From contig NC_134032.1 of assembly GCF_964204645.1 (NCBI RefSeq), positions 930,001 to 994,000 of the forward strand: a stretch of 64,000 nt of DNA, given 5' to 3'. The translations under genes were made by a program, and so were the position numbers. Position 1 is the first letter of the stretch, and each line of letters opens with the position of its first letter. Positions 5,676 through 53,495 of this stretch are shown here, one piece after another. The notes beneath the pieces were generated by a model. It was given only the letters and a program-made list of their open reading frames with translations. It did not search any database and was not told the origin of the DNA. This DNA comes from Tubulanus polymorphus (lineage: Eukaryota > Animalia > Nemertea).

Positions 5676-6180
5676 CGTTTGGACCAGGGCGCGGATCAAA
5701 CCAAGCCGGTTTTGGTTTCTTTTACACTTCCCACTCTCGCTATTTCGACACAGAAGTCATAAAGGTATATTCAATCTTTATCGTGTGGTAGGTCTATAAA
5801 CGGTTTGTGGTTTTATGGCGTTTTTATTCGTCAATATAGTCACTTTTTATTTGGCTACCGTTCGGTATAAAAGCATAAAAGTGGCTTTGTAACGCGCCGC
5901 CTCCGTTTGATAGCCCAAAACCGCTTCGCGTTTCGGTGAAAGTTTTAGGATCTTTTATTGTCGTCATTGTATCCTACGCGTTTTGAAGTCGGTGTTTATC
6001 GATTTTGAGAGTCGTGAAATGAAAAGTTCTTGTGTGTTTTACTTTATTTCGTTGTTTGCCGGTCGACTTTTCTCAGAAGAATCTCTGTGACGTCATCAAC
6101 AAAATTAGAACAAAGTTACAAAAAATCTAAGCCAAATGATCAAGATTTATTTTACCCTCAAGCTAGTCAGAGATTTCTAG

Positions 6181-6970
6181 TTTCCTTGAGCTAGTGTAGT
6201 TTATTCAAAGTTTCGACTATGTCCTAATAGTCATCTTCAGGAATACTGATGTTGTCCTCATTATAACCATTGATGAAACACTCTGAGTCCGTGTTGTAAA
6301 GATAATATAAAATCCCTGCACACTAAGAATAAAAAGAGTCTGAAATGTTTCCTTGAGCTAGTGTAGTTTATCTAACGTTTCGACTATATCCCAATAGTCA
6401 TCTACAGGAATACTGATGTTGTCCTCATTATAACCATTGATGAAACACTCTGAGTCCGTGTTGTAAAGATAATATAAAATCCGTGCACACTAAGAATAAA
6501 AAGAGTCTGAAATGTTTCCTTGAGCTAGTGTAGTTTATCTAACGTTTCGACTATATCCTAATAGTCATCTTCAGGAATACTGATGTTGTCCTCATTATAA
6601 CCATTGATGAAACACTCTGAGTCCGTGTTGTAAAGATACTGTAAAATCCCTGCAAACTAAGAATAAAAAGAGTCTGAAATGTTTCCTTGAGCTAGTGTAG
6701 TTTATTCAACGTTTCGACTATATCCCAATAGTCATCTTCAGGAATACTGATGTTAGCCTCATTATAACCATTGATGAAACACTCTGAGTCCGTGTTGTAA
6801 AGATAATATAAAATCCCTGCACACTAAGAATAAAAAGAGTCTGAAATGTTTCCTTGAGCTAGTGTAGTTTATTTAACGTTTCGACTATATCCCAATAGTC
6901 ATCTTCAGGAATACTGATGTTAGCCTCATTATAACCATTGATGAAACACTCTGAGTCCGTGTTGTAAAGA
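6181..6970 (-). repeat. Tandem array of 167-bp units, each carrying a hammerhead ribozyme motif (retrozyme/PLE-like)
   Basis: Units start at 6181, 6348, 6515, 6682 and 6849. Each has GTTTCGACTAT-(6 nt)-ATAGTCATCTTCAGGAATA (one unit TCTACAG), the reverse complement of the hammerhead core. Confidence 0.85.
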
Positions 6971-7250
6971 CCCTTTAACAATTAAAATATGTTTAAGATT
7001 ATAGGAACTTTATTTTCGACAGAAACATATTTTATGATTTAATTATCTTACAGAATTTATCCTTATTTATTTGCACCGGTAAATTTAACAATATCAACTC
7101 GTTTTACTGCGGACCAGAAACGGGCGACTCGACTCTCAAGGGGGGAAATAGCATCCGATGACATCGTTTTAAGAAGACGACTTTTACTGGCTAAACCATT
7201 ATCATGAAAGATCAGATCGTAGATTTCGCGCATTCTCGCTCGAGTATCCT

Positions 7251-7342
7251 GGGCCCAGTTCCACAGTTGTGAGTGAGTGTTAACTCTGAGTTAAAGTTAG
7301 TTCATTTTCAATGAGTTATCTCAAAACTGTGAGACTGGACCC
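7251..7342. mobile_element. Short MITE with GGGCCCAGTTCCACAG terminal inverted repeats
   Basis: Related palindromic copies at 23874-23983 and 47405-47517. Confidence 0.65.
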
Positions 7343-7399
7343 TGTCTGTTTTTGTCGGCTGGAAGTCCCTCGAAGTCCCACCAGTAACAGTCGCCGTGG

Positions 7400-10300
7400 T
7401 TACGAGTAGAATTCTTTCTCGATGTCAGCGATTAGGTCCTCTTCTTCGAGGTCATATTCAACCCTTCAAATAGAAAACGACAATGAAAGCAATATAGCCG
7501 CAAAGCAGCAATAACGGATATATTTAAGGCGGCTAGAGCAGAACTGCATTCAAAGAAAGGAAGAAATATATCTTTGTTTCCGGACTATAGTTCCGACCAA
7601 CTGACATTCGGTTTCACTTAGTTCTTGGAGTAATCATTTGACAAATGATTACTCCAAGCTTAGTTCGACTATAGTCGACTAACTCGACTAGTGACGTCAT
7701 TATGGGGTCTGAATTTGAACGTTTGCAATGAAATGTCTCCGTGCGTACCTAGTCTTCGGTTCAGTGGTGTCTGCGTGGACCGGCCGAGGTTCATTATCTG
7801 CAAATAGAACAAGACTCCCGCATGAAGGTATCGGTGCACACTACCAGCGCGGATCTGGCACGATACCCGGGTTTTACGATTTACATACGAAAAATTTTCC
7901 CTTAGATTTAAAACAAAAGAATTCCCACTTGATTGATTTAACGGGAAGGGATCGTTATCGTTTTTTTTCCATATTTCGTGACTTGGCTTCGAGTTTTATT
8001 CGAAAAAAAGTTGTATCGATTTTTGGATCGAATGTCGATTTCCGAAATGCGGCAGTGAAATATTAGCAGACGACCGCGACTCGTGCACGTGATGCGTGCG
8101 TGCGTGCGGTCAACCATGTGCGTAGCTCATCGATAAAAATTATTACACGAATATCGATCGTCCACTATAAGTGACTAGTTACTTCTTATATTAGTAACCA
8201 TAGTTACATCATCCCCCATCAACAAAACCGGAGAAAGCAATGTTAGTAGAACCAGCATGTGATTAATGCACTCCAGCTATTTCACCATCGACCGCAAATA
8301 CAATACGACAATTTTTCCCTTTTTATCACGTGATCTCTCTCTTTATCTCCTAGATTTTGAATTCTTTAACCTTGTGTAGTTATTTCCAAAATATCATCGA
8401 TGTATTGAATTGGGCAGCCAGCTATCGTTAACCCCAATCAGTCGCTTGCCGGTTCAGGCTGTTTGGAAGATAGTGTGAATGAACTGGAACCGAATTTCCC
8501 AAATTATGTACTACGATCTCAAACAAAACATTCTTGACCGCCGATCACACAACTATATCTGTACTTCGATTTCCGACCTCAATTTCAAACCCCCTGCTTC
8601 GCTGCCGGCAGGTGTGGTGAGTTCGTAGGGGACATCGAATCAAGACAAATCGAACGAAATCTACCACTCAAATAAAGAACAGGGTCATCAGTCCCTGAAC
8701 AAGATCTAAAAGATTTTGAATTGGACGTTACTTCGATCTGAAGCGGCTAAAAGGTAATGGTTAGATTGGTTCTGATTTAATAAGTTTTAGATTGCAACTT
8801 AATAAGATTTAGATTGCAACAGAGTGCAACTTTTGAGATTGGATATTGGCAGTTTGTTTGAATGGTTTTATCAAACTTTCCAACAACAAACGAGTTTCGT
8901 CGTGGGTTGGGATTCAAATCCAACACAAAGTAGAAATGATCAGCATTATTTTGACGTAAAATGACCGGTATTGATATTGACTACTGATTCTTTATACATA
9001 GTGCTAATTACGCTTGTTTTCTAGTTTCTGCTCATTAATTTCGGTTGCCTTTCAATTTCGATGTTTCTATTTTTGCAAAAAAAAGTTTTGTCGTCTTTCA
9101 AAGTCAATTCGACGTCTTCGTTAGTTCACGTGCATATATCTAATTACCTGAACTCAATTCTGTAGTTGCGGGATCCATTGGGTTGGTGTTCTGTAAAATA
9201 GAAATATTCCGAGATCAGTGAACTATATTAGATTTTCAAGATAGCGGAACTGTTTGTAGGGTATGCTCGCGGAAATGTCGGGTCTTGGGAGTTTTTTTTT
9301 TGAAACTTCTAGCTTATTTGGGGTGAAAGCTAAATTATTTGCTTCTTTTTCATTTTTGCCTAAAAATCGACTAACTTTGGAAGCATTTGCATAAACTGAA
9401 CGAATACGAATGAATAAGTGTTACCAATGAGCGTATGTTTTGAAATCGATGCTTTAATTTTCTGAAGGCTGGTATCTGGGAGGACTTTTGTTAAAACGAG
9501 CGGGGATTCATTTGAATCCCCCGATCCTGTCCATACAGGCCTAGAATTAGTGAAATACAGTTAAAAAGGGTTCCCCTAAAACAACGAATACGACCTTTCA
9601 TATGAACCCGTAGATCTGGCCACAGTCACCGATGCTCGTTAATCTACATGGATCAATTTTCTTACCTGCGGTAAATTAAAAGCTTTGAATTTACCGGTGT
9701 CAAATCCTTTGATATTCTGAAAAATAGAAAATACGTTGTAAAAACATTAGTTTCATTAAACATAGTTCATCATCGAAATAATTATAGCATATTATCTAAA
9801 ATTCATACAGCGCGTTTCTCGGAGGCTCTAGCGCTCACAATAAGTTGATTAACCTACTAACAGTAAGATAAAAATAACTAAGAGCTTTACAGAATTTCTA
9901 TATTTCACTTTGCATAAGAATTTCCAAGGATTGTTGAACCACGAAATTGAAAACGGACTGAAAACGTCTTGGGAGGTGGTTAACAAGTTATTTACGTCGT
10001 TTCCGGTATCTGTAGCGGCTGTATCGCCAAACTGATCGGCGAAACAGGTGCGTGGGTAATATCGAAATGTATTTTGTGATACTAAACGTATGCATAATTT
10101 ATAGCTTGTTTGTCGCTGTCCGTCGTTTGATGAATGTTGCGATCAGACCGGAACGTCTGCGATGGTTAACCGCCCAACCAGCGAGGGATCGGAGCTTTTG
10201 GGAAAAGGGCGTGCTCGCTTGCCAGGGTTTGATTTCCGCCCGCGCCAACGCAAACCCAGGCCGCAAAACCTTCATTGGTCTATTACATTGCCCATGGTTT

Positions 10301-13201
10301 CTTGGACGGACAGGTTCCAGCGCCCACCAGTCTATATATCTAGCCAATCAGAAGCGTGATATTTATAGAGCGGTAAAAAACGTGCGCCTTGGATATTTTG
10401 CCCCCACCCCCTCCATTTCAAAATTCGTGGATCCACCTACTACACGTGTAACATTATGTGGACACGTTCCTCATAGTCTCATGTCAGTATGACCTCGGTA
10501 GACGCGGTAGAGTCTGGTTGTTTCGTTGTGTCACGCGTAAACAATCCGCGGGTGAAATAGAACCGAAGAGAGTGCGTTGGTGTGATTGCCATCAATGAAA
10601 TATTCATGCTATAGCAATTTAAACTATGTATCGATATGACCGTGCGCGTTACAGATCGTTGGGTTAGTTAATCAGCTAGGGCAAAACTTTGCACATATTT
10701 TATATGATTGTAACATAGACAAAAAGTACACGTACCCGACGAATCGATTAAGAAAATAACTGAAATTTGCAATGTGCCCTTAAAACAGTCAGTGTAAAAA
10801 ATTTGGGTCAAGATTTCTTCGAAATTTGGATACAATTTTCATGTCTTTTTGGTGAAAATAAAAATGAAATCAATCTCAAATGATTTATTTAGAGATATTC
10901 AATTAGTGTCCTTTTCCAATAGGAAAGCGCTCCTTTCTACAGCGAAAAGTGTCATTTTTCTTGAATAGAACGGTACTCTGTGAAACGAGCTCGGCACGAG
11001 CCTCTGGCTGCTCTGATCTTTCACGCTTCATTCACCGGCCATCCTCCATCTGCAGGGACTCGAACCTGATGGCATCGCTACACTCAGCCACGGCACGAAC
11101 CCCTGCATCAGTAGACCGGGTGCGCAGGTACATGCGCAGCTTTCCGAACGAAAACTGGCGGCACCAATCAGATTGCTCGTTGTATAATCGTTTCAAGGAA
11201 GAACTATAAATGGGAAAACCCGGGCTAGAATAAAACGGGATTTCTGATTGGCTAAAAATCACATCATCTGAACTGCGCATGTATCTGCGCACACGGTCGA
11301 TTATGGCAGGGTTTCGTGCCGTGGCAATCTCGATGCCATCAGGTTCGAATCCCTGCCGGGGGAGGATGTTCACCGGCCTGTTCTCATTGAACAAACAAAC
11401 CCGTGGACGGGGATGACCTCAGTAACATGTCGACGCTCCACTCAATCTGACCTACGAGCAATTATCTGGCTCGTAGATCTGACTCAATCCCTCAGATGAT
11501 GGGTGTCGTGAAGTTCATGCTGTTTATCAGTAAGATACACTCGTGTTGTTTGTCTCATTTTCACTGGTTGACTTAAAATTCATAACTGGACGAAGCGAAC
11601 ACACCTAGTATTGTCTTATTTACAACGTATATATCGAATTCACACCAGCAGCCACCACCGTTGATTATCCATATATGAGCATCCGATGAGAAATTATCGA
11701 TTTTATTGATCGTTTATCATTATTGATCGAAAATATCGATAAAGTATTTATGAAAGAGAATGCGATAGATTGTGTCGGTAACACGCGGTTACAATAATTA
11801 ACCCTCAAATTCCCAATCTCGCTATTCAATTTAAAGGTTTTGTTTTTAAACCATTGGAGAAAATGAATGAATGAATGAATGAATGAATGAATGAATAAAT
11901 GAATGAATAAATGAACGAACGAACGAACCCACTTTGTTGGGTTCGTTCTGTAGCTCAGATGAGAAGACCCACCAGGTGTGCTATATTAGTGTGCAGTTGG
12001 ACATGAGCTAGGCTTACTGTAACGCACTGTGGATTCCACTTTCGTAAGTGAGGATCCACTAGGTGTCGCTAGTGTGCAGTAGGACATTAGCTAGGGTGCA
12101 CTGAAAAATTCCACTTATGGCAAGTGAGGAGCCACCATGTGTGCTAGTGTGCAGTAGGACATCAGCTAGGGCTACCTGTTGTGCACTGTGGATTCCACTT
12201 GGATCAACTAGGTGTTGCTTATGTGCAGTAGGACACCATGCTAGGTCTACTGCGGTGCACCGTAAATTCCACTTATGGCAAGTGAGGATCCACCAGGTGT
12301 GCTAGAGTGCACTGACCATCAGGTCCGTTATTTGCCGGGATATCTCACTAGCGCTACTTACCGGCACGGTATCTATATTCCAATCCTCCGAAGCGCGATC
12401 GACAGATTTTTGATCCCGCTGATTTTTTACGTCGTTATTAGTTATCGTGTATTGTTGACGATTCATTCTCTGAGCGTATGTTTCCGGGTAGTCCGTCTGT
12501 ACTCGTCGGCGACTGTCGGCACTTTCCGCCGCCGACGATTCGGCGTATTCCGTCAATATTCGTTCCTCCTCGTGTTGCCAGTCCCATTCCGGGGTCGATG
12601 TATGTCGTGGTCCCTGGCGGCCGTTCTTATCGTCTGTTGTTATTTTCGTGTAACTATTTCGATAGTTTTTCGTCTCGACGGACGACGCATTAATACCTAG
12701 ACCCGAACTTTCCAGTTCCTTTTCTAAAATATCCAAATCGCTTTCGTATTTATTCCTATTTCCAAACGTAGCTGAACTATCCTCGTCCATCTTCGAACGC
12801 TCACGAGGGGGCACCACTGCCGTTTTTCTGTTCGTGAATCCAGAATGATCCAGCACGTGTTGCTGTTGCTGCTGTTGTTGTTTGATAGGTGGTAACTTTT
12901 TCGGCGATGTCAACAGTTTTCCGTCGTTGCTAAGCGACGACGGATCACAATCGGTATTGTTATTGACGCCGTAATTGCTGTAATTAACGTCGGTGTTGTC
13001 GGTTTCGACGTCAACAATCGATCGCGCTGCGACCGCTGTAGATATATCGTTCTTTCCACCGTCGGCCGCCAAGTCGTCCTGGTATCGTTTGGGACACGCC
13101 GCAGACGATGACGACGTATCCACACCAATTTTACGTCTGCCCTCCCCAGCAGACGTAGCAGCGGAATCAACTCCACCACTCTGACTTTGCCCCGACCCCA
13201 T
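7400..13201 (-). CDS. Five-exon gene for a ~348-aa N-myristoylated, largely disordered protein resembling cystin-1
   Basis: Exons 13201-12362, 9716-9666, 9190-9148, 7797-7749 and 7463-7400. All introns are GT-AG and phases are compatible (0,0,1,2). Protein: MGSGQS...SAGEGRRKIGV...DTVP|NIKGFDTGKFKAFNLPQ|NTNPMDPATTELSSD|NEPRPVHADTTEPKTR|VEYDLEEEDLIADIEKEFYS*. The gene model is well supported; the cystin assignment rests on short motifs. Confidence 0.75.
8430..8700. repeat. Dispersed repeat, second copy at ~51445-51720
   Basis: Shared blocks AATCAGTCGCTTGCCGGTTCAG and CACACAACTATATCTGTACTTCGATTTCCGA. Confidence 0.7.
11040..11368. mobile_element. Mutator-like MITE with 9-bp target-site duplication
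   Basis: Termini CATCCTCC...GGAGGATG with long imperfect inverted arms. TSD TTCACCGGC at 11031-11039 and 11369-11377. Second copy at 47765-48104. Confidence 0.85.
11965..12310. repeat. Degenerate tandem repeat with recurring CCAC[CT]AGGTGT(C)GCT motifs
   Basis: About five motif copies at 11969, 12056, 12132, 12205 and 12290. The same flank recurs at ~40157-40185. Confidence 0.6.
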
Positions 13202-16200
13202 AGTTTTATGAATGTACGCGAAAAATGCCAAACACCGTCAGCATTTAAACCGTATCAAGCGTTAAATAAATGAAAAAGTTTATTCATTTATGTAAATCCT
13301 ATCGAGCAAGAAGTCATATCACTAAACGACGCTTTACCGAAATTCCGTTACACTAAGCGTATCCAATATTCTCAATTTTTCACTAAATCCTTTAGAAAAG
13401 TTCCAACAACGTCATAATCGTTGGTTTTCAAACTCGAATTCCGAATAGTCAACGAGAAACGCGACACCGGTGATATCAAACACTCTTGACGACAGACTCT
13501 GGACACTCGATTTTCTCGTAAGCGTCGCAAACACGTACTCTAAACACCCCTCTAGACATAGCTCATAATCCATATACCTACAACTACTTACAAAACCGTT
13601 ACTTATAATCACTAGTAATAAACATGTATTGTATAAGCGTAGTCCAAGCGACGTTTAGGCCTGTGAGTGTGTGTGTGTGTGACGCGGAACCCATTAGCGC
13701 TGCTCGGCGGTGGCACGGCTGTGGTTTTTGCAATAATTGCGAAATAATCTTGCGTTGAATTATTTCATTCACGGAAGCGGCGCTCGCGCGCGCGCGCGGA
13801 TTTAGAGCTCTGAATAGATCTGTACACACAGAACTAAAGCCTTTAGAAAAAGGGACACATCCCGTCGAGGTTCACTACACACGTTAAGATCGCGGTATTT
13901 ACGGAAACTGTTTTATTTCATGAATAAGTCACGCCAGCCGCTCAAACACAGTCTTTTAAATCTCTCAGTCGGTTTAGTCCGTCGTCGCTCCCTAACGCAG
14001 GCCGTTGTCCGGCATCCGTTCGCTAATAGACCGTCACACTAACGCTAATTCCGCGAGATAAATCTATCACCCGTAGGTTAAGTTAATGGAATTCTAAATG
14101 AAGCCGTTGCAAAGATCGATGGGGGGCGGGCTAATGGTGTAACGCGCCGACGGCGGATTTCCCCGTTCGTGATCCCTGAAGTACCGGCGCGAATCATCAG
14201 TTCAATCGTGCTCGAAGGTCGATCTTCACATGCATAGTCTGACGCGTGCTTTCGTGACGGCCTGCGGGCCATTGAGAGTGGTAGTCACGAGATACGCGGT
14301 GACAGGGACACAAACAAATCAACGCCAGCACTCCAGTGGAGGTGTACCTGGTTGGTATATGATCCTCATGTCACGGTTTGTTGGCTGGGCGGCTTTTTGG
14401 GGATGGGGACCGGGTCCAGCTGTATTGTATGGTAACAAACCCATAACAACGACCGGGTCCGTGCGTTCTGTTATATTTTCCCTTTGGGAATCCAGCGACG
14501 AGCTGTGAACGGGACCCGGGGACCAACCGGCGATCCTGTCCCAAAAACCGAACATGCGGAAACGGTTCCCGAACACGGCCCAGCTTAGAGATGCCTTCGC
14601 TTCAAGTTCAGGACGAAATCACGTGGGCTTGTCACGATAGCTGGGGGGCCCAAAATCAAAGATTTGACCAAGTATCCGAGGTATAAAATATACAATGATT
14701 TATTTTAAAACGGACCTGCTATTTGTTTGTTATTTTGAGAGTAATGAGTCTTACTATAACGCGTATGGATGGTCGAATAACTGGTCGAAAGATCCGTTTG
14801 TTTTCAAAAATCATGGTAATTTTTACTTCCAGGCTGGTGCGATACAGACGGATTTTGCCGATTTTGTCGGATTAATCGCACGATTTAATAATCTCAAAGG
14901 CATTGAAATTTTTCTCAAACTACTCGGTCTAACGCAGAAATTCGTTATCTTTAAAAATAATCTTACTGTAACGGGTTGGATTATTAATAACAAAGTTACG
15001 AACTGTTGAAGTGACATATCTATCGACCGATCTGACGGAGAGTTGGCTGCCGTTGTCTTTTTATATATTGTACCTAGGGGATACTTACTGGGGTCAAAAT
15101 CCTTTTGTGTCGAGTACGACCTAGTGAAAGTGGTGGCCAACAAGCATAAGGTTATTGTCACTGGAGGTCCCTTTGTATCTGTGAGGGCACGAAATCTCAT
15201 GAATTCTTATCTTTTAAACCAATATCATAGTTCGTACATTTAGAATCATTGTGGTTCTTAAAGTCTTTAACAATTGAGGCAATAGTTTCATCGTAATAAA
15301 GAATTGAGCGCACTCCACGGTAAAACTAGCGCGATTTCCTCCGTCGACCGTCTAGTGCTGCCCCTATGCATAACGATAGCGGGGAAAACGTGAACTAAAA
15401 TAATACTCGCTTGCCAGAGTCTTCGAACGGCCGTAGTGGACGAACTAATTACCGATTTGCGGGCCAGATTCCGAGGAAATTCTCAAACTCTGAAAACTGC
15501 CCAGACACTATTGAACCAAACAATTTTCATATAAGAGAATAAGCATTAAAAGAGTAATTTGAATCGGGATATTTCTAGTATCGTCTGGCAGAGAGTGACA
15601 GGTGGGTGTATGTTCTCCGCTTATTTGCACGCAATTAAAATAATATCGCAGGAAAAATATGGAAAGTTTGTCAATTCAGATGATAAATAATCATTCAAAA
15701 ATGTAAATGAATAATCTAGTCTGTATATGAATATTAATTAATTGTAATAAGTAAGTGGGAATTTTAGCTAAAAAGGAATATCGTTACCTAAAGATCCAAA
15801 ATTCATAAAATATTCATAGTATCATATTTAATCAGAATTAGGCGACACAGTGGTCCGTATTGTACGTAATAAGGAAATTATATTCCGGCGGTTAATATGC
15901 TCCGCTATTTTAGTTCACAGAAATTCCGCTATCGTAATTCATAGGGGCAGGACTGTACGGTTGACATCTAGCTTAACCTCGCCATCTTACTGCGGCATGC
16001 GAGTAGTACAGCGTGGGTTTTTAACAGAATTTCGTTGTATATTGACAATTCTATCAATCTTTAAGCTTTATTTAAGAGGATCTTCTATTTAAAATGTTAT
16101 TCAAGCCATTTTCAATAGAACCTTTCTGTCAGCGGAATGTAATAGCGTAAAGCGGTAGACTCACATGCCACAGAAAGAATTTCAAGCAAATTAAATTTTA

Positions 16201-19500: not shown

Positions 19501-21873
19501 TTTTGAAAGTGTGCTGATAAAATGTCTAATGTCCGGTGTTTGTAGTTCATTTTCAATTAAAAATGTCTCAGGTGAAGCACTGAACACATGTAAAGTGTGG
19601 ACGATCAGTTTTTGAAAGTGTGCTGATAAAATGTCTAATGTCTGGTGTTTGTAGTTCATTTTCAATTAAAAATGTCTCAGGTGAAGCACTGAACACATGT
19701 GAAGTGTGGACGATCAGTTTTTGAAAGTGTGCTGATAAAATGTCTAATGTCTGGTGTTTGTAGTTCATTTTCAATTAAAAATGTCTCAGGTGAAGCACTG
19801 AACACATGTGAAGTGTGGACGATCAGTTTTTGAAAGTGTGCTGATAAAATGTCTAATGTCTGGTGTTTGTAGTTCATTTTCAATTAAAAATGTCTCAGGT
19901 GAAGCAGTGAACACATGTGAAGTGTGGACGATCACTTTTTTGAAAGTGTGCTGATAAAATGTCTAATATCTGGTGTTTGTAGTTCATTTTCAATTAGAAA
20001 TGTCTCAGGTGAAGCACTGAACACATGTGAAGTGTGGACGATCAGTTTTTGAAAGTGTGCTGATAAAATGTCTAATGTCTGGTGTTTGTAGTCCATTCTC
20101 TATTAGAAATGTCTCAGATGAAGCACTGAACACATGTGAAGTGTGGACGATCAGTTTTTGAAAGTGTGCTGATAAAATGTCTAATGTCTGGTGTTTGTAG
20201 TTCATTTTCAATTAAAAATGTCTCAGGTGAAGCAGTGAACACATGTGAAGTGTGGACGATCACTTTTTTGAAAGTGTGCTGATAAAATGTCTAATATCTG
20301 GTGTTTGTAGTTCATTTTCAATTAGAAATGTCTCAGGTGAAGCACTGAACACATGTGAAGTGTGGACGATCAGTTTTTGAAAGTGTGCTGATAAAATGTC
20401 TAATGTCTGGTGTTTGTAGTCCATTCTCTATTAGAAATGTCTCAGGTGAAGCACTGAACACATGTGAAGTGTGGACGATCACTTTTTTGAATTGTGCCCC
20501 GATTATGAAGTGTCCTAAAATCGGGATGATTTCCTGCAGTTCATTTTCAATTTAAAAATGTCTCAGGTGAAGTTCTGAACACATGTGAAGTGTGGACGAT
20601 CAAAAATTTGTGGATTGTGATAAAATATTGCAGCAGTTTGGGGTCCGATCCTGAGTAAGGAACTGACGATTGAGATTCATCTTCAGATTTTGTTCGTCTC
20701 TATTTTTTTCAGGTGGTCGTAATTTTTCCGAGCGAGGACGCCGAAACTTTGGAGCAAATAGTCGAACGCCTGGAGCAGCGGTCGGAGCGACAAGTTCCCG
20801 TCGAACCGGAGGACGAGAAGACGAATAAATCGAATCTCGCCGATGAAAACGACGACGATTTCAAAGCGTTGAAGCGGCCGCACGCCTCGGATTCCGACTG
20901 TCCGTCGAAACGTATTAAACTGCACCCCCGACAAGCTCCGTTCGAACGGGTCGTGTTCATCGATTCAACCTGGTATCAATCGTCAAAAATATTCAACGAC
21001 GAACGATTAAAACGTAAATGATATAAATAAAAAGTCTGTCTCATCAAACCTGCAACTTTTAAAACTTCAGGGTTTCTAGGTTCAGGGGCCAGTTTCCTAG
21101 TCGTGGCTTAGACTTAAGACCAGTCTAAGACCAACTTAGTTCTATAACCAATCTAACAACTTAGGACCTCTTTTGTCTTTTGGACTTAAGTCACGACTGT
21201 GCAACTGGCCCCATGGGCCGGTTCCATAGTCAGGGCTTAGACTTAAGACCAGTCTAAGACCATTTTAGTTCTATAACCAATCTAATAACTTAAGACCAGT
21301 CGCAAGATTTAAGACTACTTTTGGACTTAGTCTTGACTATGGAACTGGCCCCTATGGTCACTATCGTCCAAAAGTGGTCTTAAATCTTAAGACTGGTCTT
21401 AAGTTGTTAGATTGGCTATAGAACTAAGTTGGTCTTAGACTAGTCTTAAGTCCAAGCCGTGACTATGGAACCGGCCCCTGGGGTTTAACTCTAGTTGATT
21501 TGAAATCTGAATTTCGTCGATTTTAATTGTCGTTTTTTTCCCCCCAGGTTTACGCTGCATCAAAATGGACGAGCACAACACGAAATTCTGGCGAAGTCAG
21601 AAAGATCCGATGCCCGACTCGTACCTGGCGACGATCGAAGCTATCTATTATTTCGTGCGCGAGTTCCACGATCAGTTCGTCGCCGTCGCCGCGGAAACGG
21701 CAGACGGACGCGAGCTGGCGCCGTACGACCATCGCTACGACGACCTGCTGTTTTATTTCGAGTACTTCTATCAGCGAATGTCGACGCTGCACAACAACGG
21801 ACGCAAAATTCGCGCTTTCGAACGACGCGAAAATAACCGACGATCGAAAAACGCGAACGAAACCGATTCGTGA
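16545..21873 (+). CDS. DTWD1: tRNA-uridine aminocarboxypropyltransferase 1 (DTW domain-containing protein 1)
   Basis: Exons 16545-16721, 18099-18236, 20713-21013 and 21548-21873 (GT-AG, in phase). N-terminal CxxC...KFYCYSC zinc motif, [23 protein letters not shown], signature FIDSTW, FWRSQ...[11 protein letters not shown] and YDDLLFYF. Confidence 0.95.
16804..17508. mobile_element. MITE (GGTAAGATTCAAGAATAGGGGACT termini) carrying a nested ~500-bp TA-duplicating foldback element at ~16829-17327
   Basis: An uninterrupted copy at 41751-41953 shows the empty site GGGGACTA|GTGGTT. Here CTGTCTGTCACAC...GTGTGACAGACAG is inserted with TA duplicated. The outer element is flanked by GTACATCAG repeats. 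Confidence 0.8.
17700..17863. mobile_element. PIF/Harbinger (Tourist)-like MITE; second copy at ~28240-28405
   Basis: Inverted termini GGG..CATTCATTTATTACGTACGCA. 3-bp flanking repeats (TAT here, TTA at the second copy). Near-identical interiors. Confidence 0.75.
18341..18889. mobile_element. Foldback MITE (~550 bp) with ATGTCTATTT...AAATAGACAT termini
   Basis: Left and right arms are reverse complements over >200 bp. A related interrupted copy starts at ~16768. Confidence 0.75.
19109..20602. repeat. 109-bp satellite array (~13.5 copies) in DTWD1 intron 2
   Basis: Monomer GTTCATTTTCAATTAAAAATGTCTCAGGTGAAGCACTGAACACATGTGAAGTGTGGACGATCAG...TCTGGTGTTTGTA. It explains the repeated 68-aa ORFs. 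Confidence 0.95.
21085..21480. mobile_element. Cluster of three short GGGGCCAGTT/AACTGGCCCC MITEs (Harbinger-like)
   Basis: Shared interior TTAAGACCAGTCTAAGACC...CTATAACCAATCTAACAAC. More copies at 26512-26977, ~30922-31050 and 34256-34525. Confidence 0.7.
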
Positions 21874-24456: not shown

Positions 24457-27400
24457 TTAACCTAAAGTTTCCGCCTGTCGCACGCGTAACACGACCGGTA
24501 CAGACGTGCACGGTATCATTCCTTTCTCCGTGACGACCATCGTGACGAACTCGGGCGGCGTAACGTCGTACGCCAGGTTCAACAGGTGCAGGTTGGCGTC
24601 GTCTTTCCAGTGCGATAGCGAATTCGTTTTCCGCTGCGTGTCGACGAGGTCGTTCGGGTCGCCTGAAAAAAATAAAACACGAAACCGATTAATGAGAAAG
24701 TTTTCGTCGGTATTCTGCGCGAATAACTTTTAATAAAATTTTAGGATCGTTTTCGAAGAATTCTTCCTCAGCGGGGATTTCAAAGTCGATGGCGTCGCTC
24801 CAGCCCCGTTACAAACCCCTGCCTGATAAACCCCAGCGCGTATGTACTAATGTCTATTTATCAATTGATGAGACCTGTTTTTCTGGGATATTTTGCTTAC
24901 TTTTTGGGGTACATACCTCATTTACATCTTAACAGAATGCCAAAAATCGCGGACAACAACTGAATATCCGATATTATTCCAGTTCCGTACCAATTAGAAG
25001 GATTGCTAAAAAGTCTCCTTTAATTCAGTTGTATGGGAGAGAAAATCCTCCATTTTGTGAAATTTCTTGGATTTGAACATTATTGTTAACATGCCTACGA
25101 AATGAGGTCTCATCCATTAATAAATAGACATTAGCCCGTGAAGCCATGAGGTCATTATAAACAGCTACAGTCAAAGCCTGTCACCGTCATAACGGACTTT
25201 GTAATAACAAACCACATTAGCCTGGGTTATTCCATTTATTACTGCGAATTTTCCTCAGCAATCTTGTGATGCCATCAGGTTCGAATCCCTGCCGAGGGGG
25301 GGGGACGCTTTGAAGTGGATTCTATTTTGCGAATCCAAGTATCACCAAACTGGACCTAACTGAGTATACCTCATTACTTAGTAGCGGAGGACATGATGAA
25401 TAATTGCGTTTGATTATTAATAAGTGTGTAATCACACCCAGAGACCCCCTAAATCTGCCCCTCCCCCCCGGAGACCCGTACTCACCTAATTCATTGGATA
25501 CGAACGAATCGGTTTGAACTCGTTCGCAGAATTTATACGTCTCGCAGCAGACGATCACCGGAACGTTGTACGACTTGGCGACGAGCGAGATCTGCGACGT
25601 ACCGACGCGTGACATCACGTAGCCGTTAGCCAATAACGCGTGAGCGCCGAGAAATACTTTAGTGGCCTGAAAAATGATAGCATAGCACGTTACAGACGCT
25701 CCACATTCTGCTGAGTCATTCAGTTAATTCTATATTTTTGTTATGGTACTTTTGTTTTGATATGGTGCTAGCGTTAACCCTTTCAGTGCTGACTAATCAA
25801 TACCCTATAGTGCTGGAGATAATTTGAAAATTCTGAAAAATTCCGCCCTAGTGTGTTGAATAAAGGGAATACCACTATAGTGAGTCTACACCGCGGTGCG
25901 GTGTATCGTTAGTTACTAGTATTTCACTATGTTTAACAGGTGCTGCTATCTTTCATGAGATAAAAACTAATTACCAATTACACCAATACACCGCAGTGTA
26001 CTAGCAAAATCTATCACTGATTCATACATCCCACTGCGGTGTAGACGCACTGAAAGGGTTAACTGTTCAATTTTCTTGATTTTTGTTAGGCCTGCATAGA
26101 TTGTACATATGTTTACCTATTCTTTGCAAATAAATATAGTGAAATGAATTGAAATTGCTAAGTTTTTAGTCACACCATTCAACATTTCTATTTATTCAGT
26201 GAGGAGATTTATTCGTTTATTACTTCTCGTCGGAAATGAGAAACTAAGTATATTTCTAAGGCTGAAAAAATTGATACCTTGTTATTCCTTTCTACTGAGC
26301 TTAAAAGTTGACCCGGTCGCCTATCTACCCAGTACTTTACTTAGTCAAGCTTACAATAACAGACCCGGCAGTTAAAGAAACCAACTGATTATAAATTCTA
26401 ACGCAGCAGTTTTCAAAATGACCCGGCCGATTAGGAGAAACAAGGTATCATTTAATATTAGCCATATATTTGCCTTTCTATTTTAGCCTAACCAAATTTA
26501 GACTGATAATCTGGGGCCAGTTGCATAGTCGAGGCTTAGACTTACTTAAGACCAGTCTAAGACTATTTTCATTCTATAGCCAATCTAACAACTTCAGATC
26601 AGTCTTAAGATTCGAGACCACTGTTGGACTTAACCTCTTCGCTATCATGCGTGACGTATATTTGAATATATTCATTTACTACAATTGCTGGTGCGGTGAG
26701 TCACTACGCAGCTGGTGTATAGACGTACTAAATGATCGTCCGCTTCAGTTTAGTTACACCGTTTACTCATAGATGGCGAATCTGTGCCTCAAATACTGAA
26801 CTGAATCGAAAATAAATATGAATATGGGAAAAATGCTCTGGTGAGGGGCGTTACATCAACTATGGTAGCGAAGAGGTTAAGACTATTTCCGTTCTATAGC
26901 CAATCTAACAACTCGAGATCAGTCTTAAAATTCGAGACCATTTTTGGACGCAAGTCATAACCGTGAAACTGGGCCCGGAATCAAAGTCCTCGATCGAGAC
27001 CATGATGTAGATATATACCGACTTACTTCTTGCATTACGTAAGAGGCAGCGTTGATGAGAACGTATGAACAGTTGATGCCGTGTTTCACTAATCTGCGCA
27101 GCTGTTCCTTGCCTTCGAATTTCGGCCGTCCGTCGACGACGATCACGCGGAACTTTTTACCGCTGTTCGACGCGTCGCACAAAACCTTCTTGATGACGGA
27201 CGAACTACAAAACAAATCGGTCAGAAAAACGTAGCTGTCAATCAATCCGTTTCTGTAGCCCCACCCCCTCGGAAGTCTGGACGAACGAAAACATTTTTCA
27301 CAAACGTTGAATGTACGTCTAAAATTCACGGTTCCAACACGACTTCCGAATTCGTTTTCAAAGTGTCCGTTGTGGTGATTTCAAAACACGCAAAGGTACC

Positions 27401-49581: not shown

Positions 49582-52166
49582 TCGTCAATTCTGGTTTTTA
49601 AATTCTTTTTAATCTGTAAATAGTGGGATTTTATCTTATTATCCGTTCACCACGATTGAGTGCGGTCATCGTTCTATTCTGTTTAGTTTTAGAAAGAATA
49701 ACTGCGGTCAAAAAAGCGTTAATACATTGAATAATTAAATCCTTCGATCTAAGAAACAATGAGGATTAATTAGATTAAAGGTTTTATTAAATCATGGACG
49801 TATAAACTAGTCTATACGTCCATGATTAAATAAAGCAAATTGCATTGCTATTGAGTCAGGTGAGTCAGGTGGAACTTGAATTTAGCTCACATGCTTAGGC
49901 AACATTATATTATACTAGACATTCTGTTAATGTCCATCTATCAAAAATGAATTTTCGTAATCAAATCATTTATTTCCACTTATTTCATTAATGATATTAA
50001 TTTGAACACTTGGAGGGAAAATTTATGTTTTGGAGGGAAAGTAACTGAATGGATAATGATTGAGGGATTTTGTGTGGAGGGAAAATGGCCGGAGGGAAAA
50101 TGACAGTGAATCCTTTATTTCTGCGTGCTTTCCACAAAAAATGCTTATTTTTGACTTTGTTGAGAAGTTTCGTCTGATATATCAAAATTATTGTCATTTC
50201 TTGGTGATACCAAAAATTTAGTCATCAAAAGCCAGGTACACATCACTTTTGGGCAATTAACTTGTCAGATGACATAAGTGAAATTTATTGGTTACTACAT
50301 TTACGTACTGACCTGTACCCGTCCCTGCCAAATTTTGGACACCATAAAGAAATGTATATTTTTGGCCTTATTTGACTACAGAATTATGCATTTAATTTCA
50401 AAAAGACATGTACAATAATTGTACATGTAAATTATCTTATTATATTTCTCATCACGTCACTGTTTTGGGGCTGGCCAGGTTGGGACCGGGATCCCCTACC
50501 CCTCTGAGACCCCTCTGAGAGTCCCTCGGTCGTTTCCCGATGATGGCGATTTATTGACTGGAATACTGTCCTCACCAGCCGTTATTGGACCACGCGACCT
50601 AGTTTAACTGTTCCCGCGGAAACCACCTACAACACTAGGCTGGCTACATCTTCACCCGTCAAGGGATTCGAACCCACTAAACCCGCCAAAGCTGTTCGCC
50701 GAACCCCTTGACCTCACGAGTCGTCGGTGTCGTTACTAGCCGACCAGAATCCGGTCGTACCAATCACAGCGCTTGTAACAAACGACTCTAGGCTTCTATT
50801 GGTTTTCTCGTTAAATGGACCAATCAGCGAACGTTTTACCGAACAAGGAAGTATTTCGCAAATCGATATATGACGTCATGCGCAACAGCGCCAGTAATGA
50901 AATCACGCTTCGCGAGGCCAGGGGGCTGGTGGAAATGAGTTCGGGAGTTATACCTGACCCCTGGCAAGCGAGGATGGGCTGGCTACAATCGTCCAACAAA
51001 CTGCTAATCATTTTGGCACATCTAGTGTCTCCACTCACTACACGTAAACGCTGTCAAAAATTAAGTATGTCCTAGATTTAAAAATTCAATGATTCTGATA
51101 GATTACGCATGCGCATAAACGGCAAAGGAAAACAGTTTTGGGCGGGTTGATTAAGTTGGCATAGTGTAGTCTAACAAAGCCAGGGCGATCTGCCCTAATA
51201 TAGCCCGCTGAGAACTTTGTTTTGTTTTTGGCCTTACGTCACTTGCACGTGTCCGCTCAATTTCCATTCGTCGGGGACTCGATCTGACGTGTACTTTTTG
51301 TGGGTACACCCATCACGGACGTCACTTCATCCACTAAGGATTAAAGAAAAAATATATATATAAATGGACAAAATGATCTTCAACCTTGTAATATAGCTAT
51401 TTCCAGAATCTCATTGTATTAGATGAGGCAGCCAGAAAAATTCACCCGAATCAGTCGCTTGCCGGTTCAGACTGAATGGAAGATTGTTTGAATGAACCGG
51501 AACCGCAATTTCCAATTATGTACTTCGATTTAAAAATATTCTGTTAACTCGACCGCTGATCACACAACTATATCTGTACTTCGATTTCCGATTTCAAAAT
51601 CAAACCGCCTGTTTCGCTGCCGGCGGGTGTGGTGGGTCTGTAAGGGACGCTCAATCCAAAAATCAAACAAAATTTACCAGCCCAATAAATAAATAATGGG
51701 GACAATCCCTATTCTAAGATCAAGGATTGGGTGCCGAGCGTTAATAAACCTGCTATTGGTACTGAAAAACTGTGCGCCAAAACAAACATATGGTGATAAC
51801 CCTATGAATGAAATATGCAGATCAAATTGCCATTGAATTAAGTAGGATCATTTAATAATGTGATATTGAATAATGAATATCGCCATGTATATGCGCTACT
51901 GAAGATCTGAATCCGTGAATGCAGGTAACAGATGAAGTAATTAAGCCGAGCTGTTTAATTGCCCGTTGATGCGTATTAATATCACCCTGTGTCTGAGCAT
52001 AGTTTAAAATAAATGTAATATATATATATATATATATATATAATTCCCCACGCGCCCGCGGGAGTCGGAACTTCTCATCTTCTATGTGGTAGATTTCCAG
52101 AATCAAGTGACGTTTCAAAGACAAGCTATAAGTAGGTCAGCGATCACGTGGCCACCTTCGCGAACG

Positions 52167-53495
52167 ATGCTTCATGAATTGAACGTTAACAACGAGAAGG
52201 ATGAAGATTCTGTTGAAGATAAGGGTTACGGCAGTATGGACTCATTCTGCAGTGCAGAAGACGCCATGTCTAGTTCGTGTAGCCTTCGTTGTCAGCACAG
52301 GCCCAGCCCTATAGCTATCGTTTGTATCGTGAGTACAGCGTCGCTGATAATCGAAGTAACGCGAAGCGCTGTAATCACCGTCACTTCCGAGATCCTTCAC
52401 GATGTTGAAAACGATACCGCAGAAGATCACCGGATCGCTTTCAAAATAGCGACTACCCAATCCGCGTATAACTTCGGCCTGATTTTCGGAAACGTCCTGT
52501 GCGCGCGAGTGGCGTACAGTCGCGGACATTTATACCCGTTTTGGTTTGGACTACTGACCGGACTCGGCGCTACTTCCATATCGGCGTTTGCGTCCGCGTG
52601 GTGGGTTCTGGCGTTAGCGAATTTACTCGTCGGACTTTCAATTGCGTTTGTTGCCAATGCCGGTTCGACGATGGTCGCTATCGCTTTCGACGATGAAGAT
52701 GATAGGGCCAAAGCCCTAGCCGCCATATACAGTTGCCGATACGGTGGCACTTTATTCGGTTACGCGGGCTGTTTGTACGTGGTGAAATGGACCGGGCGCG
52801 TGGCTCCATTTTGGGCCCTCTTCGCCGCTTTAGTCGTCACGATCGCTATTCGAGGTTTCACGAATATTGAAAATAACCGCGACGAAAATTCAATAAATAA
52901 ACCTTTTCAACTCAGCGTCGTGAAATCGATGCTTACCGATGCCCAGACGTTAGTGTTATTTGGCTTTAACGCAATGGACGCAGTCTCTAACAGTATTTAC
53001 TACAGTTTAGTACCGTTGTGGATTATAGAACACATCAGCGCTAAACATTGGCAACTAGCGACTATAAGACTATCGTCGGCGACTCTTTTCGTTTTCAGTA
53101 CAAACGTCTTCGGATTTTTTGTGTCGAAAACTAGAAGCTATCGATGGATTTATACTTTTATTAGTTTCATGCTGGTGGCTGTATCGTTCATTATCTATTC
53201 GTTTATTCGGAATATCTGGCAGGCGTTCGGCCCGGCTTGCGTATGCACGTTAGCGTTCAGTTGGTTCGGCGCTTTCATTCACTCGTGGCTGTCGGATGTG
53301 GCCGAAAAGAAATTCGACGAAAATTACGCGACGATGTTCGCTATCGATGTTGTCTTCTGTCGTACGGTCTCAATTGTACTAACATTATGTACAGGTTTCG
53401 TGCAGCCTTATGTCGGATACCCGGCAATATTTATAGGTCTCGGTATTGTGGATTTCATCTATTCGTTCAGCTCCTATAGTTTACGAGGTATATGA
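52167..53495 (+). CDS. Intronless divergent SLC18 (vesicular amine transporter-like) MFS transporter
   Basis: About 12 hydrophobic segments. VMAT-like blocks by recalled alignment: DDEDDRAKALA (cf. DDEERGNAMG), GRVAPF (GKTAPF), MLTDAQTL (LLKDPYIL), VPLWIIEHISAKHWQLA (LPIWMMETMCSRKWQLG), YATMFAIDV (YGSVYAIADV), GYPAIFIGLGIVD (GFPWLMTIIGIID). The first ATG is at 52167; the open frame begins at 52086. Confidence 0.8.
   Translation: MLHELNVNNEKDEDSVEDKGYGSMDSFCSAEDAMSSSCSLRCQHRPSPIAIVCIVSTASLIIEVTRSAVITVTSEILHDVENDTAEDHRIAFKIATTQSAYNFGLIFGNVLCARVAYSRGHLYPFWFGLLTGLGATSISAFASAWWVLALANLLVGLSIAFVANAGSTMVAIAFDDEDDRAKALAAIYSCRYGGTLFGYAGCLYVVKWTGRVAPFWALFAALVVTIAIRGFTNIENNRDENSINKPFQLSVVKSMLTDAQTLVLFGFNAMDAVSNSIYYSLVPLWIIEHISAKHWQLATIRLSSATLFVFSTNVFGFFVSKTRSYRWIYTFISFMLVAVSFIIYSFIRNIWQAFGPACVCTLAFSWFGAFIHSWLSDVAEKKFDENYATMFAIDVVFCRTVSIVLTLCTGFVQPYVGYPAIFIGLGIVDFIYSFSSYSLRGI

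Follow-up and report, generated by a model that had tools for sequence, protein, structure and literature searches.

A hidden five-exon gene, possibly a divergent relative of cystin-1, in the ribbon worm Tubulanus polymorphus

The subject of this study is a stretch of 64,000 nucleotides from the genome of the ribbon worm Tubulanus polymorphus (G000:C8:930001-994000, from a genome of 268 Mb in 77 contigs), which is called the window here and whose positions are counted from its first letter. On its minus strand a preliminary description had proposed a hidden gene of five exons and a likeness to cystin-1, a polycystic kidney disease gene of human and mouse (the mouse Cys1 is the cpk gene product). 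The exon coordinates, sizes, phases, GT-AG borders and the C-terminal end of this proposal were all reproduced in our analysis. From the sequence, the locus very probably contains a real gene, and the complete five-exon chain as predicted is probably right. The reading we favour as the most parsimonious one, namely that the gene product is a divergent relative of cystin-1, is held tentatively, at somewhat below an even chance. The parts of the gene are as follows, with splice junctions marked by a slash:

12362-13201, minus strand: coding exon 1, 280 codons from MGSGQS, ending in phase 0, donor CCG/GTAAGT
9717-12361, minus strand: intron 1, 2,645 nucleotides (nt), holding a tandem repeat, a microsatellite and an element resembling a miniature inverted-repeat transposable element (MITE)
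9666-9716, minus strand: exon 2, 51 nt, phase 0-0, NIKGFDTGKFKAFNLPQ, acceptor ttTTCTATTTttcag/, donor CAG/GTAAGA
9148-9190, minus strand: exon 3, 43 nt, phase 0-1, NTNPMDPATTELSS plus one base, acceptor TTCTATTTtacag/, donor CAG/GTAATT
7749-7797, minus strand: exon 4, 49 nt, phase 1-2, (D)NEPRPVHADTTEPKT plus two bases, acceptor TTCTATTTgcag/, donor TAG/GTACGC
7400-7463, minus strand: coding part of exon 5, 64 nt, (R)VEYDLEEEDLIADIEKEFYS plus TAA stop, acceptor TTCTATTTgaag/
7071-7066 and 7014-7009, minus strand: two AATAAA polyadenylation (poly(A)) signals, 330-390 nt past the stop, read directly

The reading frame of the first exon belongs to an open reading frame (ORF) of 309 codons (12302-13231, minus strand), with the ATG at position 13201 in a context of A at -3 and G at +4. 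The predicted coding exons (840 + 51 + 43 + 49 + 64 nt) add up to 1047 nt, corresponding to 348 amino acids (aa) and a stop codon. Throughout the five-exon model the frame stays open (phases 0, 1 and 2), all borders follow the GT-AG rule, and the predicted protein ends in VEYDLEEEDLIADIEKEFYS directly before the stop. A tandem array of ~167-bp units (6181-6970) begins directly after the poly(A) signals of the gene.

The splice signals of the model are conspicuous within their surroundings. Three of the 281 GT sites on the minus strand between 7300 and 12400 match CAG/GTAAGT at six or more of the seven flexible positions, and these three sites are where exons 1, 2 and 3 end; the entire 64-kb window, taken on both strands, has nine sites with a donor match of 6/7. 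For exon 2, the donor matches at 6/7 positions and the acceptor tract contains 12 pyrimidines in 14 positions. In addition, all four acceptors have the 8-mer TTCTATTT in common, which ends 2-5 nt upstream of the respective exon (9729, 9203, 7809 and 7475, minus strand). In 256 kb of other loci there are about five copies of this 8-mer with an AG no more than 4 nt downstream, and the four acceptors of this type observed in the gene compare with an expectation of ~0.1 (a ~30-fold enrichment). At one site elsewhere in the genome (locus L028) the 8-mer belongs to a demonstrable acceptor that precedes a kinase HRDL exon, and it is absent from the introns of RRM2 in the same genome. The likeness among the acceptors stops at the 8-mer, and an origin from a repeat element was therefore ruled out. 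The 8-mer could be a site for a gene-specific splicing regulator or a preferred variant of the 3' splice site. As an observation in its own right, the RRM2 gene (C2:26233800-26234840), with introns of 65-85 nt, GTAAGT or GTATG donors and pyrimidine-rich CAG acceptors, offers a useful splice-signal reference for this genome.

The two last exons were selected by an enumeration in which their encoded motifs played no part. All frame completions after exon 3, consisting of one terminal exon or of one internal and one terminal exon (n = 8,544), were scored by site strength and codon usage alone. The combination of exon 4 and exon 5 took the first rank, and the runner-up, 3.3 bits behind, also ends in exon 5.

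The log-odds table for the codon-usage tests was derived from kinase-domain exons of this genome (n = 20, all uninterrupted). Read in its own frame, exon 1 reaches +57 bits, against -36 to -102 bits in the five other frames, and all seven of its 40-codon blocks are positive. The small exons 2 to 5 score +1.4, -2.7, +1.9 and +10.4 bits, and in exon 5 the two alternative frames are closed. Jointly, exons 2-5 exceed 98.5% of random four-segment sets of open AG..GT stretches drawn from the window (P ~0.015, mean score). Of these two lines, the splice signals are in our judgement the stronger argument against chance. Taken together, these independent ab initio tests leave the proposal of a hidden five-exon gene well supported.

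The predicted protein opens with MGSGQSQSGG and, further on, SAGEGRRKIGV; both the MGSGQS start and the latter segment had been pointed out before, and the segment occupies residues 17-27 (AGEG-RRKIGV, residues 18-27). With Gly2, the start MGSGQSQ fits the PROSITE-type pattern G-{EDRKHPFYW}-x(2)-[STAGCN]-{P} and thus the consensus for N-myristoylation, a modification that is predicted here. The exon 1 product is acidic (net charge -10), rich in S, D, T and N, with 26% hydrophobic residues and a Q8 run. A single-sequence AlphaFold (AF2) model of exon 1 has a mean predicted local distance difference test score (pLDDT) of 46 and suggests a mostly disordered body; helices are predicted at 151-165, 208-237 and 242-263, none of which reaches a pLDDT of 90. 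At the other end of the protein, exon 5 encodes an acidic, amphipathic C-terminal segment of 20 residues that sits on its own exon.

The comparison with cystin-1 rests on both termini. Residues 1-44 of human CYS1 comprise the start MGSGSSRSS, a polybasic RTLRRRRS (residues 10-17) and AALEGGTRRRVPV at 28-40 (PMC11240719, Table 2), so that the human MGSGSS start given in the preliminary description could be confirmed. Targeting of cystin to the cilium needs myristoylation of G2 and the AxEGG element within residues 28-35 (PMC10929748; PMC8440558), and the polybasic region beside the myristoyl group is treated as a functional part of the human protein (PMC8440558). Compared by eye, the worm and human N-termini both show MGSG-S-S and A-x-E-G and then, across a gap of two residues, RR[KR][VI]xV. 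The worm RRKIGV resembles the human RRRVPV, and an element of the AxEGG type is thus partly present. Of the earlier claim that the AxEGG motif occurs in both proteins, the human element stood, and the worm protein has A-x-E-G in a like position; the worm AGEGR lacks the second G.

At the C-terminus, binding of necdin in the yeast two-hybrid system required the final 25 residues of mouse cystin, which were also sufficient for it (PMC3859662). The worm protein ends in a peptide of the pattern YDxxEExLxAxIExE[YF]. The human 20-mer, assumed here to end in YDxxEExLxAxIExE[YF]xx, was not found in the paper texts searched. Aligned by hand from end to end with this assumed human C-terminus, the worm peptide shows 9/20 identities and four conservative pairs. 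Against the same presumed sequence the hand score is 52 (BLOSUM62, raw), i.e. ~27 bits ungapped and ~6 standard deviations above shuffles of the worm peptide. Because the choice of the terminal exon was blind to the motif, chance is an unlikely source of the resemblance if the assumed human sequence is right, leaving divergent homology or convergence of a short motif.

A number of results weigh against the relationship. Within the first ~40 residues the worm protein contains one A.EG (AGEGR, at residue 18) and no A.EGG. Nor does it contain a polybasic region; residues 7-21 carry no positive charge, and R22, R23 and K24 are the first basic residues. The C-terminal match leans on a human sequence that is assumed, as described above. 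Sequence searches, which took the exons singly (exon 1 in large protein sets; exon 5 or the terminal peptide in Pfam, PDB and the worm's own genome), point in the same direction. Pfam yielded no family for exon 1 or the 20-aa terminal peptide, even at E<=10. A word-indexed search of 5.8 billion proteins returned nothing for exon 1, nor for residues 1-45 at E<=10, and an exhaustive phmmer search of 1.84 billion representative proteins delivered no credible relative of exon 1. The sole phmmer match, P0001, was rejected as spurious, being a tandem-repeat protein of 1,386 aa whose score is summed from 14 weak repeats. A feature search of the ESM Atlas, with exon 1 as a whole and with residues 140-280, gave no usable match, and a PDB search with the sequence of the terminal peptide gave none. 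Since the AxEGG element and a polybasic stretch are not strictly present, we file the gene as cystin-like rather than as a proven member of the family, and the cystin-1 reading, though plausible, stays at the level of motifs.

When exon 5 was compared with exon 1 by BLASTP, no internal repeat emerged. Paralogues were sought across the worm's own genome using exon 1 and exon 5 as well as a degenerate DNA pattern for the C-terminal motif; this locus alone came up, and the gene is single copy. At C2:19577631-19577753 (plus strand; L039:1441-1563) we noted a short open stretch that ends in SEDEILIAKIEWEFNELFINFSA before a stop and is followed by AATAAA 70 nt later. This stretch has L-I-A-x-I-E-x-E-F in common with the C-terminal peptide (a match with one mismatch). 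It is probably a chance match, as the degenerate pattern occurs at a rate no higher than that of the reversed control.

Intron 1 contains repetitive elements:

11040-11368, intron 1: MITE-like element of ~330 bp, present in >40 copies with 95-99% identity on all large contigs
12033-12171, intron 1: 75-nt tandem repeat, 1.9 copies, with degenerate copies up to ~12300
11862-11927, intron 1: (AATG)16 microsatellite

The MITE-like element matches its own reverse at ~68%, which, together with its copies, points to terminal inverted repeats and to activity in the recent past. A scan of 6000-13600 with Rfam at gathering thresholds gave no family match, and a transfer RNA (tRNA) scan of the locus found none.

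The neighbouring genes in the window are the following:

20674-21870, plus strand: DTW-domain protein
24460-27329, minus strand: eIF2B delta, 12 kb upstream of the cystin-like gene
52044-53492, plus strand: MFS transporter, a single exon of 483 codons
55191-55859, minus strand: rhodopsin-type G protein-coupled receptor (GPCR)

A weak linkage to human 2p had been claimed for this neighbourhood, since human CYS1 and EIF2B4 (eIF2B delta) both lie there. The neighbour is indeed eIF2B delta, and lipin, which also has its human counterpart on 2p, is found at C8:626 kb, 310 kb from the cystin-like gene. However, seven 2p genes besides these two map to C1, C2, C5 and C6. The neighbours of human CYS1 are among those located elsewhere, with RRM2 and ODC1 on C2 and GRHL on C6; this counts as a further point against the relationship, and microsynteny with the human CYS1 neighbours was rejected on this ground. 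Of the further 2p genes, NBAS and KIDINS220 are on C5, BIRC6 is on C1, and NUC153 genes are on C1 and C5. Human 2p thus corresponds to a patchwork of no fewer than five worm chromosomes. The linkage argument is correct but worth little.

Different explanations of the locus have to be weighed. An ORF arisen by chance, the remains of a pseudogene or a fragment of a mobile element would be in line with the lack of homologues and with the low-complexity composition, rich in S, D, T and N and including the Q8 run. We regard such a non-functional origin as very improbable, since an open stretch of 311 codons at ~45% GC is expected ~2e-4 times per window, the codon usage is like that of the kinase exons in the correct frame alone, the locus is single copy and the splice signals are organised. 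A different matter is whether exon 1 is real and the 3' part of the model wrong, either by read-through or by the use of other exons further down, in which case the protein would lack the acidic C-terminal peptide; read-through would run to the in-frame stop at 12302-12304 and give 299 aa ending in VSSASEISRQITDLMVSAL. The weakest sites of the model, the exon 4 donor TAG/GTACGC (4/7, an average value) and the AAG acceptor of exon 5, could point to such an error, as could the codon scores of exons 2-4, which are singly near zero and slightly negative for exon 3, and the small distance in bits to the runner-up completion; these points count against the full chain. On the other side, a GTAAGT stands 19 codons before the end of the ORF and these 19 codons score 0.2 bits, no AATAAA occurs within ~600 nt of the read-through stop, and the other top donors of the region belong to exons 2 and 3 and are positioned 43-51 nt past strong acceptors with matching phase. 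Moreover, one 8-mer precedes all four downstream exons, and the two best completions both end in exon 5, so that we consider a wrong 3' part unlikely.

More weight has to be given to the explanation that the gene is real and spliced, and restricted to nemerteans as an orphan, its likeness to cystin-1 being a coincidence or a convergence of short linear motifs. Even then the protein would be a disordered adaptor with a lipid anchor, but it would have no kinship with cystin and need not be ciliary. The motifs in question would be a generic N-myristoylation site, an N-terminus rich in G, A and S and an acidic amphipathic C-terminal helix. None of our searches delivered a relative, no paralogue exists in the own genome, neither the AxEGG nor the polybasic feature is present in strict form, microsynteny is missing, and the cystin comparison was picked after the fact. 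Against the orphan explanation stand three to four ordered islands, two of them at the extreme termini, which are improbable by chance given a terminal exon chosen without regard to the motif, and the N-terminal half of the human comparison, which has been confirmed (PMC11240719). On balance we hold the orphan explanation to be a serious one and still doubtful.

If the gene product is instead a divergent cystin-1 relative, a mechanism can be proposed. The protein would be co-translationally myristoylated at Gly2, and a lipid-binding chaperone of the UNC119/PDE6D type would carry it to a membrane, most likely the ciliary one. The AGEG-RRK element around residue 20 would probably assist this membrane targeting. 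The C-terminal helix may serve as a docking peptide for a partner, which by analogy with cystin could be of the MAGE family. Candidates from both partner families are present in the genome: GMP_PDE_delta (UNC119/PDE6D-type) genes occur twice, at C2:3.74 Mb and C7:16.45 Mb, and a single MAGE gene lies at C3:5.36 Mb. Three islands would have survived in the same order, i.e. the lipidation site, the AxEG-basic element and the C-terminal YDxxEExLxAxIExE[YF] peptide, the latter judged against the human sequence as we assume it. The polybasic switch would be missing and the linker much longer in the worm. It is possible, with rather less than an even chance, that cystin-1 is not a vertebrate invention and that the gene described here is its first protostome orthologue.

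Cystin-1 is poorly conserved, and its origin and essential residues are unclear. A ribbon-worm relative, if true, would place the origin of the gene before the split of protostomes and deuterostomes, pinpoint the residues under long-term constraint and thereby aid the interpretation of patient variants. The irreducible functional core of cystin would then comprise myristoyl-Gly2, AxEG with its basic/hydrophobic tail, a single amphipathic helix and, as a docking peptide, the C-terminal YDxxEExLxAxIExE[YF], and the polybasic switch would be a later vertebrate addition. It would also suggest that the original partner of the C-terminal peptide was a single ancestral MAGE protein and not the mammalian necdin. 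Independent of cystin, a long disordered exon followed by four micro-exons shows how a gene escapes ORF-based annotation, and the gene documents an unusual acceptor 8-mer in all its introns.

In comparison with cystin-1 itself, the worm and human proteins are alike in a myristoylatable Gly2 and a disordered body. Human CYS1 has an exon 1 with 318 coding nt ending in phase 0 and an exon 2 of 53 bp (PMC8440558). In both genes a big first coding exon ending in phase 0 is followed by tiny exons, a resemblance of a generic kind; the worm has four downstream coding exons versus two. The N-terminal third is acidic in the worm, whereas cystin is basic there. Two further differences belong with the adverse points above. 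The worm protein has 348 aa versus 145-158 aa for cystin (~2.2 times the human length). The last intron lies one codon before the C-terminal motif in the worm versus ~14 codons in human, a distance obtained by arithmetic from the published exon structure (PMC8440558) and a human length that we take to be 158 aa. With respect to the lipid-binding chaperones, the worm protein resembles cargo of the UNC119 type in its Gly2, the small uncharged residues 3-5 and Ser6. NPHP3 and transducin alpha are N-myristoylated cargo of this type with folded domains and belong to recognisable families, whereas the worm protein has neither a folded domain nor a recognisable family.

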